A stretch of DNA of 10,150 bases from Selaginella moellendorffii (lineage: Eukaryota; Plantae; Lycopodiophyta). Under the pieces are notes generated by a model. It was not told where the DNA came from, searched no databases, and worked only from the letters and a program-made list of their open reading frames with translations. Made by a program: the position numbers and the translations under genes. The DNA lies in assembly GCF_000143415.4 (NCBI RefSeq), contig NW_003314344.1:58665-68814 (forward strand), read 5' to 3'. Positions 3,570-10,150 of the stretch are shown here, in pieces; the stretch's first letter is position 1, and each line of letters begins with the position of its first letter.

Positions 3570-4410
3570 GTCATAGTGCAACTTGACTATAGATATAACT
3601 GAATTTAACATCCAAGATTTCCAAATTTAAACCGTATTTTGGACATGTATGTTTGAGATTATTGAACAGTGAACTCGAAAGAAACCCAACTTCTGTGGTT
3701 TTATAGCAAATGTTGGTGTTAAATAGTTGGTTGTGCGGCAAGTGTTTGGAGGTGATAAAAGTCAACTATTACAAAAGTTGTGAGTTTCATTGGGCAAAGA
3801 GTGTTAACAAACATTGCCGATGCATCAAGTCTAATTTCCATCACAAGTTCAAATAGTTTTGTCGAGAGTGGATGGATGCACCCATTAAAAAGGAGCACAA
3901 AGTAAAGGCAAATGAGACATGAAGAAGATAAAGTGCCAATTGAACACCTTTCACAGATGGAGTGCTGGTTTGCATGCTGGAAAGTTCAAATATTTCATTA
4001 GAGCCATTATATTCTCTATGTAAGCTTTCTCTCAATTTCTTTCTTATCACATTCAAATGTTGCATTTTTCTTATGATCAACTATTTGATGACATTGCACT
4101 TACAGCAACAATTAATCTCTTTGAGAGCAAACATTAGAGTTGGAGAACTTTTGAAGCAAGGAAAGGAAAGGTGTCTCTCTATGAAGCTACACTCTTGGAC
4201 CTCACTAGATCTTTTGAGAAGTCATCAAAAGCTTTAGCTGCACAGAAAGTAAAGTTTGTTGATATAGGTCCAAAATTAAACAAGGTTTGAGTAGAAATAC
4301 AACACCAGTAGTAGGGTAAAAAGTTAAGATGGTGGAGGAAATTGTTGCTAGAACCACTCGGGGACATAAGGACAGTCTGTATGAAGTGTCGATAGATTTG
4401 ATGAGCCTAA
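3570..4410 (+). pseudogene. Degenerate Mutator/MULE-like transposase fragment, interrupted by the LTR element
   Basis: Manual translation across stops and frameshifts gives FWTCMFEII..KPNFCGFIAN..VRQVFG, SCEFHWAKSVNKH (CxFH motif), MECWFACWKVQIFH and NLFESKH*SW..SLYEATLLDLTRSF. These are colinear with MULE-type transposases recalled from bryophytes. Confidence 0.7.
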
Positions 4411-5563
4411 TGTAAGCCACAAATTTTTTCCTTTCCAATTTGCCAGCTTACCTTGTCTATCCGTCCAACACTGCCTTGGCTTTTGCTAAGTTCCCTCGCC
4501 AAGGTTCCCGCCTATGGTACCAGCTCTTACTTGGTCCTACTTGGTTTCAGCTACTCACTGCACAAGCAACAGTGTGTTAGCCATCCATCCACGGATTCCC
4601 AAATCTCTCTCAATCCCCCTTTCCGGGTTAGACTGGACTTAAGGTTCGGCTACACTCCCCACAAGCATAAGCAACCAAGCACACCAAGCTTTCAGGTTCC
4701 TAACATCCCTTGGTACCACAAAACTTGATTATGGGACCCTCTAAATCCCAAGTCTTAGGTGCAACACTTGCTTCGGGATGCCAGGGCGAAACACCGTGGC
4801 CTAATGGCCTAGTATGGGTACTTCTACCCCCCAACTTCCATCCCAAAGGGAAGGTCCAAGCCCCTAGGAAGGGTGAGGACTAATGAGCCGCATGGTACTC
4901 AAGTGGGGCACCACTCCACATGAGCCAGGAGCACCGCAATCGGTTTCCCTTTCAGGAGTGGGAGCTGCTCTTGAGCACTTCCTTGGATGGCCCCTCCGGC
5001 ACCAACCACGTCCATGCTCACTCCCACCCAAGGCCCCTCGGTCCCAGTCCCAACCTCAAGTCAGTTTGGAAGCTCCACTGGAGAGTTCCTTCAAAACTGG
5101 TTCCTAAACCTCATTATCCCTACTATACTTTTGGAACCCCCTACAGCCCCCCCCCCCCCCCCTGGGAGATGCACGCTTTGGGCTTTCACCCCTTGACCCG
5201 TATTAGTACTCGGACTTAGTCTCTGGCTTGATCTCAGACTCGATCTCGGATCCGACTTTGGATTCGGTCTCGGACTCAATCTCGGACTCGATCTCGGACC
5301 CGATCTCGGACCCGACCTCGGACTCGGCCTTGGACCCAATTTCGGATCTCGGACTCCGTCTCAAACTCGGTCTCGAACTCAGTCTCGAACTCGGTCTCCG
5401 AGTTGACCTTGGACTTGATTCCGGACTCTATCTCGAACTCGGTCTCCGAGTCGGTCTTGGACTCGATCTCGGACTCGGTCCCATCCGATGAACTTTTTAT
5501 CATTTTGGTCATGCTTTCGGGGATCCTTTAGCCTACAACACCTCGGGGAGTTGGTTCCTTACA
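4411..5563 (-). repeat. 3' LTR (1153 bp), termini TGTAAG...CTTACA
   Basis: 4411-4553 aligns to 10004-10135. The other end is set by CCTTACA at 5557-5563, which gives a 6-bp terminal inverted repeat with TGTAAG and directly abuts the PPT. CCTAA at 4406-4410 is the candidate TSD. Confidence 0.85.
5209..5480. repeat. CpG-rich tandem repeat, 12-bp unit about CTCGGACTCGAT (6-bp subunits), about 20 degenerate copies, in LTR U3
   Basis: Directly visible, e.g. ctcggactcgatctcggacccgatctcggacccgacctcgga. Confidence 0.93.
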
Positions 5564-5575
5564 ACTCCACCACCC
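5564..5575 (-). promoter_or_regulatory. Polypurine tract (GGGTGGTGGAGT)
   Basis: G-rich tract immediately 5' of the TGTAAGG LTR start on the minus strand. Confidence 0.75.
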
Positions 5576-5753
5576 ATAGAAGAAGTTTGATGCCCATATC
5601 GAACGTCTCTTTTTTATCCTACGACTTGTTGACCATGTCTCCGGGGGCATCCCCCCACTTAGTGGTGTGCCTAAGTTAGCCTCCCTGGCCAAGAGCCCAT
5701 AACAACGGAATATAGGTGTCCCTATACTCCTCACCTCACCACGCCCTAGTATA

Positions 5754-5807
5754 GGGTTGGGACTTGAACCCAGCCTTGCTTTACTAGGGGGTTGGGACTT
5801 GAACCCA
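5754..5807. repeat. Direct repeat GGGTTGGGACTTGAACCCA x2
   Basis: Identical 19-mers at 5754-5772 and 5789-5807. Confidence 0.9.
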
Positions 5808-5927
5808 ACCTCCGTAGAATACGTCTACGGATTCGACATCCCCACAGAGAGTCGGGCATAGTTCCCTATGCCTGGTTGACCTAGCTAACCCATGCTAATT
5901 AGCTTACCTTCGGCGCGCCTTCGGGTC

Positions 5928-6001
5928 CTAACATATGCCATTGCTCAACTTCTTAAATTGATACTTTTAATTGAACTTTGCATAAGTACATAGAGTTCTA
6001 C
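5928..6001 (-). other. Possible intron (74 nt) after the chromodomain
   Basis: CAAG|GTAGAA...TATGTTAG|GACC. AT-rich island whose first 25 nt match the 52-nt insert at 18 positions. Confidence 0.55.
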
Positions 6002-6008
6002 CTTGCAG

Positions 6009-6164
6009 AAATTCCTCCACTAGATCTCGCGTGTTCGCTAGGTTCTCCTCTGGTTCCCATGTTGCTTCGCAGTGTGGAAATCCTTTTCACTTCACATGGA
6101 ACTCTCTCACCTCGTGTTTTTGTCGCTTGCTCTTGCGCGTATTGAGGATGGCCTCAACTTCGTA
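6009..6164 (-). pseudogene. Chromodomain at integrase C-terminus
   Basis: YEVEAILN...EFHVK*KGFPHCEATWEPEENLAN...VEEF, with the conserved W mutated to TGA at 6087-6089. Confidence 0.92.
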
Positions 6165-6348
6165 TTCCTCCTCCCCTTGGATAACCTCAGGTAAAGGTCT
6201 AACTTGGTCCTTGCAAAGCGGATCCTCAAAATACAGCTTGAGTAAGTTCACGTGGAACACGGGGTGTATCTTCCCCATCTCTCGAGGAAGTTGGAGACGG
6301 TAAGCCACTTTACCGATTCGAGCCTCAATCTCGTAAGGCCCTGCGAAC

Positions 6349-6400
6349 CTGCTTAAGGAACTCAAGATCAATTCATTTACAGGAGTACATGAATTTTTAC
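6349..6400 (-). other. Putative spliceosomal intron (52 nt) before the GPY motif
   Basis: AAAG|GTAAAA...TTCCTTAAGCAG|GTTC. Removal restores KLTQRFAGPY and the frame. The unspliced sequence has an immediate TAA. Confidence 0.85.
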
Positions 6401-6818
6401 CTTTGTGTCAACTTTTGGCTGATCCCACTTAGTAGCCTAAGGTTCTTGGTGTTCAGCCACACCTTCTCCCCAACTTGGAACTCTACATCCCGGCGCTTCT
6501 GGTTCACGTACTTAGTTTGCTTTTGTTGAGCCCGTTCTAAGGAATCCTTCACTAAATTCCAAATGTTGAGTCTTTCTGCCGTGAATGCCTCTACTGCGGG
6601 TAACTCTCTATGATACTCGACCACGTCGAGTTCCACAGGACCTTCAATAGCTCGCCCATTGATGACTTCCCATGGACTCACCCCGATGCTCGAATGTGGT
6701 GAGTTGTTATAACACATTTCCGCAAGTCCCAAATGACTTACCCAATCAGTTTGGTCTCCCGAGACATAACATCGTAAATAATCCTCCAGTTGCCTATTCA
6801 CCCGTTCTGTTTGTCCGT

Positions 6819-6865
6819 CTGTTAAGAAGTGTTAGTGCCATCAATCTTGACTTAATACCCATTAC
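6819..6865 (-). other. Putative spliceosomal intron (47 nt) in integrase core
   Basis: ACAG|GTAATG...CACTAAC...TTCTTAACAG|ACGG. Removal restores HPQTDGQTERVN and the frame. Canonical CTAAC branch motif present. Confidence 0.85.
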
Positions 6866-7079
6866 CTGTCTGCGGGTGATAGGTTGTGCTGAATTTCAAC
6901 TTGGTGTGATACTGTTCTAGGAGTGTCCTCCAAAACCTATTGGTGAAGATTTTATCTCGATCTGAGATAATCTCTTACAACCTTCCCCGCACTCGAACCA
7001 CTTGTTCGAAGAACAATTTCGCCACATCTTTCACATCCACTTCCGTTGTGGTGGGTATGAAATGTGCCATCTTCGAGAA

Positions 7080-7367
7080 GAATGCTACTGGATGGTTGTG
7101 TTGCTTCAAAATTGCGCCCAACACAAAGTCTGAAGCATCCGTTTCTACCTCAAAGTCCTTACCAAAGTCCGGTAACGCTAGCACGGGAGCCTTCCTCAAC
7201 TTCCCCTGGAGGTGGACGAATGCTGTCTCGCATTCCACTATCCATACCATCTTCCCTTTTCCCGTTTGGTCCGTTAAGGGTAAGGCTACTCTCGAATAGT
7301 GTTTGATAAACTTTCGATAGTAGTTGCATAGCCCTATGAATGCCCTTAACTTGTGTACATTTGGTGG
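7080..7367 (-). pseudogene. pol: RT connection and N-terminal RNase H (truncated by internal deletion)
   Basis: LRAFIGLCNYYRKFI, APVLALPDF, ETDASDFVLGAIL and HPVAF, followed by a direct jump into integrase. Confidence 0.9.
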
Positions 7368-8255
7368 TCACTCCCAATCCTGGATCGCTTGGACCTTCTC
7401 AGGGTCCACCTTGAGCCCGTCCTTGCCCACCACATGCCCAAGAAACTTTACCTCTTGTTGAGCAAAGTCATATTTGCTCTCTTTAGCATACAGCTGGTGT
7501 TCCCTTAGTTTCTCAAACACTTTTGTCAAGTGTTTGGCATGCTCCTCTAGTGTTTCGCTATAGATCAGGATGTCGTCAATATAGACGACCACAAAGTGAT
7601 CCAAATAGGGTATAGAGATATGGTTCATCAACGCTGAAAATGTTGCCGGCGCATTGCATAGCCCAAAGGGCATCACCAAAAACTCGAAGCTCCCATACCT
7701 CGTTCGACAGGTTGTCTTCTCGACATCTTCCTCTGCTACCCTGATCTGGTAGTATCCTGACCTTAGGTCAATCCTCGAGAAGTATTTTGCCTTTCCCAAC
7801 CTATCGAACAGGTCCTCAATCCTTGGCAAAGGGTACTTGTTCTTCTTTGTATATTTGTTGAGCAACCGGTAGTTTATGCACATGTGCATAGATCCATCTT
7901 TCTTTTTCACAAATAGCACCGGCACCCCATACGGCGACTTGCTCAACCTAACATACCCTTTGTCCACCAACTCCTCTAGTTGGTGCTTGAGCTCCGCAAG
8001 TTCTTTTTCGTTCAAACGATAGGGGGGACGAACCACCGCCTCAGCACCCTCGACTAGCTCAATCTTATATTCTATTGGTCGTGCGGGGGGCAATCCCGCT
8101 GGTAGCTCATCTGGCATGGTATCCTGGAATTGGTCCAACACCCGCTGGATCACTAAAGGTACTTCTTCCGTTCCAATCTTTTTGTCACTTCTTATCGAGA
8201 GTAAGCACAAAAATGCAGCCTTGGTCCCTTTAGTGAGTTGTCCTCTCGTGGACAC
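7368..8255 (-). pseudogene. pol: Reverse transcriptase domain
   Basis: [41 protein letters not shown] (7572-7583) and FLGHVV motifs. Confidence 0.98.
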
Positions 8256-8303
8256 CGGGTTTAGGCACGAATCTTTGGCCTTGCATTGCCCTACCTTTAG
8301 ATC

Positions 8304-8696
8304 CTAGGCCTCCACCCTGGATCTTCTTCCTTGGGCATTCGCTAGTACCACAAGGTTCCTACTTTGTCCATGTAGGGCTACCACAAACCGATTGAACCAA
8401 TCCATCCCGAAGATCACGTCAAATCCCACCATGTCCAACACAGTGAAGTCCATGTTTACTATCCAAGTCCCTACTTCGCCTCTCGCTTGTCGAAGTACCT
8501 CATTGGTGCTTTGGCTACCTTGAACAAACTCTATAGTCCTTGGTTCACTTAGCCGCTGCACCGTTAGTCCGGCTTGCCGGACTATGTCTGCAGCCACAAA
8601 ATTATCCAAAGCACCCGTGTCAATAAGGATCTTAACAAAGCTACCCCTGAGCTTCCCTCGGAGGGCTAGTAGATGTCGCAAACGACTCTCTACCAA
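8304..8696 (-). pseudogene. pol: Aspartic protease domain
   Basis: ILIDTGALDNFV (DTGA at 8610-8621) and FDVIFGMDWF motifs. Confidence 0.93.
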
Positions 8697-8802
8697 AGTT
8701 GCTCGTGTAATGAGTAACTTTGAGCTAGGGACTAGATCACATACCTCAATTTGGACTTCACCCGACTTAATGGCTATATTGGCTCTGGCCTTCTTTGGCT
8801 AG

Positions 8803-9944
8803 GGACATTCCCTCAAAAAGTGTCCCGCTTCACTGCAGTTGTAGCATACGTTGTTTCCCACGCTGTTAAATGACTTGACCTTTTTATCCGTGGGTTTGTC
8901 TCTTTTTGCTTGACTCCCCCACATACTTGCTCACTGGCCACCGGATTTGCCCTTCCGGAACCCCGAGGACTCATTCTTAGAGAAACTCTTCTTGAATTTC
9001 CCTTTGCTATAAGTTCCCCTTGGTTTGGCCCCTTTGCTAAATGTGGATCCCAACCCCGTCGCGTTCCCCTTTCACAGGTTATCATTGAAATGCACCTTGA
9101 TAGCCGCATCCAACGCTTCCTTGTAGTTGGTCGGGTTCCAGTGCATCACCTCACCGCGAGCCCAGGTTTGCAAACCTGATATGAAGGCATGGAACGCATC
9201 CATATCCCCCATGTCCGTGACAAGTATCCTCTTTGCCATGAACCCATTCACATACTCCTGGATAGTTCCAGTCTACTTTAGCCTACTCAGCTTATCTCTT
9301 AGATGCAGAGTGGCATTCGGAGGAACATATGTTGCGCAGATCCTCGCTTTCATCATGTCTTAAGTGGCCACCGGTCCTTCGTTGGCCTCTGTCGTTCTCC
9401 ACCAAGACTTGGCATTATCTGCCAAGTATGGTTTTGCACATGGGACCTTCTCCGAGCTCGGTAACAACAACGCTTGGAAGTAGTCCTCCATATCGTAAAA
9501 TCAATCCTCCACCACTTTATAGTCGTTCACTCCCTTGAAGACCGGTGGGGGCTTTGGTTTGTACTTGGGCACTGCTTGTGGGACTAATTCCACTTCGGTC
9601 TATTCAACCTTGTCTGGTTTTGCCTCAATCCCTGCCAAAGGGTCTGGACCTTCTGTGCTGCCAACATCCGCAGTCTTTTGCCTTTTCTTCCGCTTCTTGT
9701 CACGCTTTAGCTTGCACACGAGAGTCTCCAGCAGGGCATTGGTCTGTGCCAATTGTCCTTCTAGAACATCCAATCGAGCCTTGGACGACCGAACCTCACC
9801 ACCGGACTCCTGTTTGGAAGTTTCCTCATTGGAGTCCTCCTCATGCAAGGATTCCTCATCCATAGCCTCTTGTTCGACCGGAGCCTCCAGCTCTGGAGGA
9901 GGTTCTGTCCCCGCCTTGGTTCGCTTCCGCCCTGCCTTTGCCAT
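8803..9944 (-). pseudogene. gag: gag region of gag-pol polyprotein with CCHC zinc knuckle
   Basis: ATG at 9944. Reading through stops gives PPVFKG..., AKSWWR, LRDKLSRLK*TGTIQEY and FISGL, then CYNCSEAGHFLREC at 8805-8846. Same frame as pol. Confidence 0.9.
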
Positions 9945-9977
9945 CTCCTAACAATCCGCCTCTATCCTTCGCTAAAA

Positions 9978-10044
9978 CTGAGGAAAAGGCTCCGATACCA
10001 AATTGTAAGCCATAAATTTTTTCCTTTCCAATTTAACAGCTTAC
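9978..10044 (-). other. Candidate leader intron (67 nt) spanning the LTR end and PBS
   Basis: GAG|GTAAGC donor in U5 and CCTTTTCCTCAG| acceptor about 33 nt before the gag ATG. Confidence 0.6.
9988..10000 (-). promoter_or_regulatory. Primer-binding site, tRNA-iMet type (TGGTATCGGAGCC)
   Basis: One mismatch to canonical TGGTATCAGAGC, 3 nt inside the LTR end. Confidence 0.92.
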
Positions 10045-10135
10045 CTCGTCTATTCGTCCAACACTGCCTTGGCTTTTGCTAAGTTCCCTCACCAAGGGTC
10101 CCGCCTATGGTACCGGTCCTACTTGATTTTAGCTA
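10004..10135 (-). repeat. 5' LTR (U5 end, partial)
   Basis: 132 bp align to 4411-4553 with 9 substitutions and one 11-bp indel. It lies 3 nt from the PBS. Similarity stops after 10135. Confidence 0.93.
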
Positions 10136-10150
10136 GTAGACTACGTGGAT

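Follow-up and report, generated by a model that had tools for sequence, protein, structure and literature searches.

Two candidate introns in the integrase region of a chromodomain-bearing Ty3/gypsy LTR retrotransposon

The window, by which we mean the whole 10,150-nucleotide stretch of DNA that was analyzed, contains a copy of a chromodomain-bearing Ty3/gypsy LTR retrotransposon in which two short stretches of additional DNA, one of 47 nt and one of 52 nt, interrupt the integrase part of gag-pol. The two stretches have the anatomy of small spliceosomal introns, their sites are unique in the window, and both are absent from the relatives that could be reached. We favor an explanation, to which we assign a probability of about one half, in which the two stretches are young U2-type spliceosomal introns that belong to the lineage of the element, have been transmitted through unspliced RNA, and gate production of a complete integrase.

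The host element and the state of the copy

The element occupies positions 4411..10150 on the minus strand of the window, and its 5' LTR is truncated by the window end. Pfam searches of this strand place a gag knuckle, protease, reverse transcriptase, RNase H, the SH3-like integrase domain, and a chromodomain in that order. Judged by its LTRs, this domain order, its match to integrase, and the chromodomain, the host element is a chromodomain-bearing Ty3/gypsy LTR retrotransposon with the following features.

10004..10150, minus strand: final 147 nt of the 5' LTR, with CA end; 129 of 146 ungapped columns are identical to the end of the 3' LTR
4411-4521 and 10004-10114, minus strand: LTR direct repeats, 94% identity over 111 nt
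4533-4553 and 10115-10135, minus strand: continuation of the LTR repeat, as direct repeats
9988..10000, minus strand: primer binding site, three bases inside the 5' LTR end, read directly in the sequence
5967..9944, minus strand: gag-pol gene, broken, delimited by frame counts, tblastn against relatives, and sequence reads
8802..8852, minus strand: gag zinc knuckle, zf-CCHC (Pfam PF00098, E 3e-7)
8343..8642, minus strand: aspartic protease, RVP_2 (Pfam PF08284, E 2.6e-15)
7431..7910, minus strand: reverse transcriptase, RVT_1 (Pfam PF00078, E 5.7e-37)
7068..7244, minus strand: front part of RNase H, covering positions 1-64 of the 100 in the profile (PF17919, E 3e-16)
6819-6865, minus strand: 47-nt stretch, candidate intron
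6231..6347, minus strand: SH3_Tf2-1, SH3-like domain of the integrase C-terminal region (PF24626, E 2.2e-16)
6003..6164, minus strand: chromodomain with one in-frame stop inside (PF00385, its two pieces separately E 7.6e-7 and 0.028)
5230-5477, no strand assigned: tandem array of about 21 units of 12 nt with 69% matches, noncoding, between pol and the 3' LTR
5147..5163, minus strand: probable polypurine tract, an A followed by 16 G, as read in the sequence
4411..5145, minus strand: 3' LTR, probably about 735 nt with TG..CA ends; the 4411 end is firm and the start is provisionally placed from the polypurine run and the TG

The chromodomain piece with an E value of 7.6e-7 exceeds the curated cut-off of PF00385. 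The primer binding site is probably of the plant initiator-Met tRNA type, as known from plant LTR elements. If the 3' LTR is placed correctly, bases 4406-4410, just outside it, would be one copy of the target duplication. Translated in some frames, the 12-nt tandem repeat would give a low-complexity peptide rich in Ser, Glu, and Asp, but the repeat is located past the pol stop. The 3' noncoding region of the element also holds a pair of 30-nt direct repeats (5747-5776 and 5782-5811) that are 87% identical and 35 nt apart.

The left 4.4 kb of the window is A+T-rich and noncoding and probably includes what is left of another LTR element. At positions 1829-2361, 533 consecutive N mark a gap in a draft scaffold, and the very low G+C content that the profile displays there is an artefact of these N. 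Searches of the flanks identified no gene, no tRNA, and no Rfam family. A second word resembling a primer binding site, presumably also of the plant initiator-Met tRNA type, is found in the left flank at about 343-356 on the minus strand; it suggests a remnant of another LTR element and hence nested or adjacent repeats.

The copy is old and dead, and its decay has proceeded almost wholly through base substitution. We judge it so because gag-pol contains 11 in-frame stops (7 in gag and 4 in pol), the front half of integrase has been lost, and the LTR ends diverge by approximately 6-12%. From the gag ATG to the 47-nt stretch, 1,026 codons can be followed in one frame that is interrupted by 10 stops (7 in gag, 3 in pol); the two alternative frames contain 62 and 55 stops over the same span. 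The piece between the two stretches comprises 138 codons without a stop, and the last piece of gag-pol, which follows the 52-nt stretch, comprises 121 codons with one stop. Comparison with six full-length relatives by tblastn resolves four collinear pieces that together contain four stops, and it places two frame changes and a single in-frame loss. That loss of about 250-300 residues has taken away the back part of RNase H along with the front half of integrase, including the zinc-binding part of the latter and its two catalytic Asp residues. The deletion, which falls within the pol gene (5967-8798), is flanked by two short, similar coding words, a pattern that would fit deletion through microhomology or template switching. 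The first-pass annotation of this DNA was silent on both the dead state of the copy and the missing front half of integrase. Across approximately 1,285 codons of gag-pol, only two events shift the reading frame, and these are the 47-nt and 52-nt stretches; comparison of pol with eight relatives disclosed no further extra run of at least 12 residues.

Anatomy of the two stretches

The first-pass annotation had drawn attention to the 47-nt stretch, describing it as an insert with GT and AG ends and a GTAATG donor, and our reading of the minus strand bears out this description. The branch-type word CTAAC that it had pointed out is present, with its A located 13 nt from the last base, and 8 of 13 bases make the tail of the stretch moderately pyrimidine-rich. 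Three-frame translations confirm that the insert splits the integrase motif HPQT-D-GQTE, the two halves of which are read in different frames. The catalytic Glu, said to follow shortly after the insert, is encoded four codons downstream; we take this Glu to be the third residue of the catalytic triad, as established for retroviral-type integrases. A 4-bp repeat had also been noted at both junctions, and indeed the same four bases immediately precede the stretch and also close it. As RNA, the 47-nt stretch folds no better than its shuffles (z +0.73).

The annotation's further statement that excision leaves the motif intact agrees with separate comparisons of the two flanking pieces, which match adjacent integrase residues. 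In BLASTP, the upstream piece of 40 residues ends at residue 983 of a relative (P0256), and the match of the downstream piece to the same protein picks up at residue 984. Because the flanks match adjacent residues, the 47-nt stretch has been added to the gene, which lacks nothing else at this position. Starting from the same motif, the downstream piece also aligns with residues 1264-1390 of the integrase chain of Ty3 Gag-Pol (7q5b_A); this similarity is distant (E 8e-9), and the motif in the yeast gene is, unlike that in the window, uninterrupted. Junction counts by tblastn against the six relatives yield about 47 extra bases at this first site. The frame that is read into the stretch reaches a stop after four codons.

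The second frame change, which falls after the integrase core and before the SH3-like domain, is likewise caused by an extra stretch, in this case of 52 nt (about 43-52 extra bases by junction counts against the six relatives). It lies on the sense strand, begins as AG/GTAA (the slash marks the junction), and ends as CAG/ after a pyrimidine-rich tail (7 of 13 bases). It contains a YTRAY word, the A of which is 19 nt from the end, and has a 4-nt repeat at its junctions. The RNA of this stretch is predicted to form a two-hairpin fold of -9.7 kcal/mol, with a z of -2.95 against shuffles.

Thus, both stretches are on the sense strand, start as AG/GTAA, end as CAG/, and contain a YTRAY word, the A of which lies 13 nt (47-nt stretch) or 19 nt (52-nt stretch) from the end. 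Their A+T content of 64% and 67%, respectively, compares with 50-56% in the surrounding coding DNA (50-53% in the coding DNA set against the 52-nt stretch), and T accounts for 30% and 35% of their bases. Both donors depart from consensus at positions +5 and +6, and the pyrimidine tracts, with 7-8 of 13 bases, match it only moderately, which counts against the intron reading.

The junctions bear on the possibility that foreign reads were stitched into the integrase of a draft scaffold during assembly. The 533-base N run does mark the window as such a scaffold; however, it sits 4 kb away, in the flank, and an artefact of this kind would have to have occurred twice, each time exactly bounded, with neighboring residues intact and with splice-like ends. 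We therefore consider an assembly artefact very improbable.

A different question is whether a dead element, in the course of ordinary decay, acquired two insertions that merely happen to begin with GT and end with AG. In a random model in which the repeated four bases are appended to a random 43-mer, GT..AG ends are cheap, arising in 6% of trials once the junction repeat has provided the AG; the fraction falls to 0.5% when GTAA is added and to 0.14% when CTAAC is added, and all features of the first stretch occur jointly in 1.3e-4 of trials. The window offers 19,050 stretches of this length, and a single one combines all of these features. Nonetheless, the features were selected after the fact and scans of many windows yield rare coincidences, so the 47-nt stretch alone is indecisive. 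In the 52-nt stretch both GT and AG are supplied by the repeated four bases, and its ends therefore carry little weight. We applied a strict filter (AG/GTAA..YAG, 40-75 nt, A+T of at least 0.60, and a branch-like word), the features of which were picked after the first stretch had been seen. On the 3,960-nt coding sense strand, the filter retrieved those two donor sites only; on the controls, comprising the antisense strand and both strands of the rest of the window (15.9 kb), it retrieved none. The second frame change was defined independently of the reader's selection, and its passage through the same filter lifts the result above chance. Taken together with the elevated A+T content of both stretches, these results make coincidence an improbable account.

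Relatives and the origin of the stretches

Under the favored explanation, other copies of the family would be expected to carry the stretches. Neither is present in the relatives within reach: the integrase motif is uninterrupted in the relatives L001, L002, L003, and P0001-P0004, and one of these (L002) reads straight through the position of the second stretch without any counterpart. The first half of the motif directly precedes the motif word in 115 of the 128 relatives that bear this word. Every relative examined, these 115 included, has an uninterrupted motif, which argues against the favored explanation. The relatives compared are all distant, their identity not exceeding 65% in reverse transcriptase or 49% in the integrase piece.

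Several searches defined the reach of this comparison. Against a word-indexed protein collection, the integrase piece returned four distant matches and no sister copy; the reverse transcriptase piece returned best matches of 55-65% identity, from flowering plants and metagenome contigs, and again no sister copy. The named best reverse transcriptase matches are all from plants, specifically flowering plants. Together with the type of the primer site and the nearest relatives, they point to a plant as host. A fungal host, which the CTAAC word and the size of the stretches might suggest, was rejected because of these plant matches and because both primer sites in the window are probably of the plant initiator-tRNA type. 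A HMMER pass over 1.84 billion representatives gave best identities of 39-49% and no sister copy, and no relative emerged when contigs from metagenomes, prokaryote genomes, and viruses were scanned for related loci. When metagenome contigs were scanned for a degenerate form of the split motif, with a gap of 47 bases between its two parts, three low-complexity chance matches were obtained, none of them integrase. One protein that starts exactly at the motif (P0235) was rejected as a case of a split motif, as it is simply truncated by the end of its contig.

The nearest relatives in reverse transcriptase, with 62-65% identity, are two Sphagnum-associated metagenome contigs (L001 and L002). Both contain decayed chromodomain-bearing elements in which the integrase frame is broken by a stop and the motif is uninterrupted. 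The origin of a near relative in a Sphagnum metagenome says only that the lineage is plant-like.

The absence of both stretches from all reachable relatives is also what would be seen if they had been inserted into this copy alone after it had landed, either as filler DNA in the repair of staggered breaks or as very short, introner-like mobile sequences with splice signals of their own, and were unrelated to expression of the element. The 4-nt repeats at the junctions of both stretches, the age and decay of the copy (11 stops, LTRs about 6-12% apart), and the GTAA start and near-identical nine-base end that the two stretches share are in keeping with such an origin. Unselected filler DNA, however, has no reason to begin with GTAA, to contain a branch-like word, and to lie in the sense orientation, and to do so twice. 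The copy has no other frame-shifting insertion or deletion anywhere. Templating from nearby sequence was rejected for want of a convincing template: the window contains no local template of at least 11 nt for the 47-nt stretch, and for the 52-nt stretch it contains a single 12-mer match, 3.8 kb away, where 0.05 would be expected. Microhomology is present at the junctions of the stretches.

Nor do the stretches behave as members of one mobile family. Only 23 of 52 columns are identical when they are aligned, so that they are too dissimilar to be copies from a single mobile or introner family; a second copy of either is absent from the window, and no terminal inverted repeats were found at the two stretches. 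With these points on either side, we regard insertion confined to this copy as the main rival of the favored explanation, though an unlikely one.

The first-pass annotation had offered an introner-like insertion as the alternative to an intron. The repeat does fit an origin by insertion, yet such an origin would explain how the introns arose and does not compete with the intron reading. Most introners are found in species that are aquatic, unicellular, or fungal, and a few land plants have them too (PMC12130899). The stretches described here resemble them in being short extra DNA within coding sequence, with terminal splice signals and with junctions marked by a short direct repeat. They differ in that introners are present as many similar copies at unrelated sites, whereas we have two dissimilar stretches from a search of the window alone, and in that the DNA they interrupt belongs to a mobile element instead of a host gene. 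New Daphnia introns with short direct repeats on either side have reportedly been attributed to the repair of breaks.

For the favored explanation, the 4-nt junction repeats of both stretches count in its favor, since they fit recent gain by insertion; part of such a repeat is expected from the splice consensus alone. As for the annotation's reading of the 47-nt stretch as an intron, the anatomy proved right and the intron reading gained weight from the second stretch, but no reachable relative has either one.

Partial splicing as a possible route to integrase

The length of the stretches counts against the favored explanation, as 47 and 52 nt fall below a practical minimum of 60 nt for plant introns and the host is probably a plant. 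The small-intron host to which the first-pass annotation took the length to point is conjectural. In Arabidopsis, a steric cut-off for introns has been placed at 60 nt (PMC11078188), and a filter used in plant annotation treats introns shorter than 60 nt as abnormal (PMC3141229). Persistence within an LTR retrotransposon poses a further constraint. Because copying goes through RNA, efficiently spliced introns should vanish from such elements; introns persist only if splicing is partial, since splicing of the packaged RNA would erase them. Some plants may have many introns of 50-60 nt.

LTR elements of plants are generally free of introns, and Ogre and EVADE are the noted exceptions (PMC12786077). 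In Ogre, a Ty3/gypsy element of the Tat/Ogre group from pea and Medicago, a partially spliced intron allows translation of the downstream pol (PMC6317226; PMC12786077). The present element resembles Ogre in having candidate introns within the coding region of an LTR retrotransposon, here one of probable plant origin, kept in a genomic copy. The Ogre intron, however, is a single, longer intron of the spacer type located between the gag-protease and RT-RH-IN frames, with spacers that average 172-274 bp (PMC6317226), whereas here two stretches of about 50 nt lie inside the conserved integrase of a chromodomain-bearing lineage. Neither stretch occupies the position typical of Ogre, that is, between the gag-protease and RT-RH-IN frames of a Tat/Ogre element; both are inside the integrase part. 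In addition, splicing has been demonstrated for Ogre, whereas the candidate introns described here are known from DNA. In EVADE and other Ty1/copia elements of Arabidopsis, which belong to another superfamily, the host spliceosome produces multiple RNAs from one genome (PMC12786077). The present stretches can be compared with these elements as further candidates for processing by a host spliceosome. Splicing of EVADE is said to yield a subgenomic RNA that favors Gag, the part removed being coding sequence and not extra DNA.

These considerations suggest a model for how the stretches may have arisen and what they might do. Each stretch would have originated through insertion at the level of DNA, accompanied by a 4-nt duplication, with some of the splice signals coming from the target site. 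Both stretches would still have been present in the RNA from which this copy was reverse-transcribed. On unspliced genomic RNA, ribosomes could make Gag, protease, reverse transcriptase, and RNase H but would halt within 0-4 codons of entering the first stretch, four codons before the catalytic Glu, such that no active integrase would be made. The rest of integrase, together with the SH3-like domain and the chromodomain, would be encoded only by RNA from which both stretches had been spliced. In this model, partial splicing would set the amount of complete integrase and would separate the pool of RNA used for translation from the pool used for copying, a principle that has been demonstrated for the Ogre intron.

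Stated in full, the proposal is that a plant chromovirus lineage recently gained two integrase introns of about 50 nt through insertions that left 4-nt duplications, that partial splicing has kept them, and that active integrase comes from spliced RNA only, copying being left to unspliced RNA. We advance this conjunction of claims more tentatively, as less likely than not.

Were the stretches private to this dead copy, they would amount to an oddity of DNA repair. If the proposal is true, intron gain would have been caught inside a retroelement, and plant LTR retrotransposons would provide a second, independent case of pol gated by splicing. The stretches, if real introns, would speak to how new introns arise, inasmuch as both still have the 4-nt repeat at their junctions; if, in addition, the host is a land plant, its spliceosome would handle introns of about 50 nt. 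It would also follow that the principle embodied by Ogre, in which partial splicing serves as a valve for pol, has arisen more than once and can fit within the conserved core of an enzyme.
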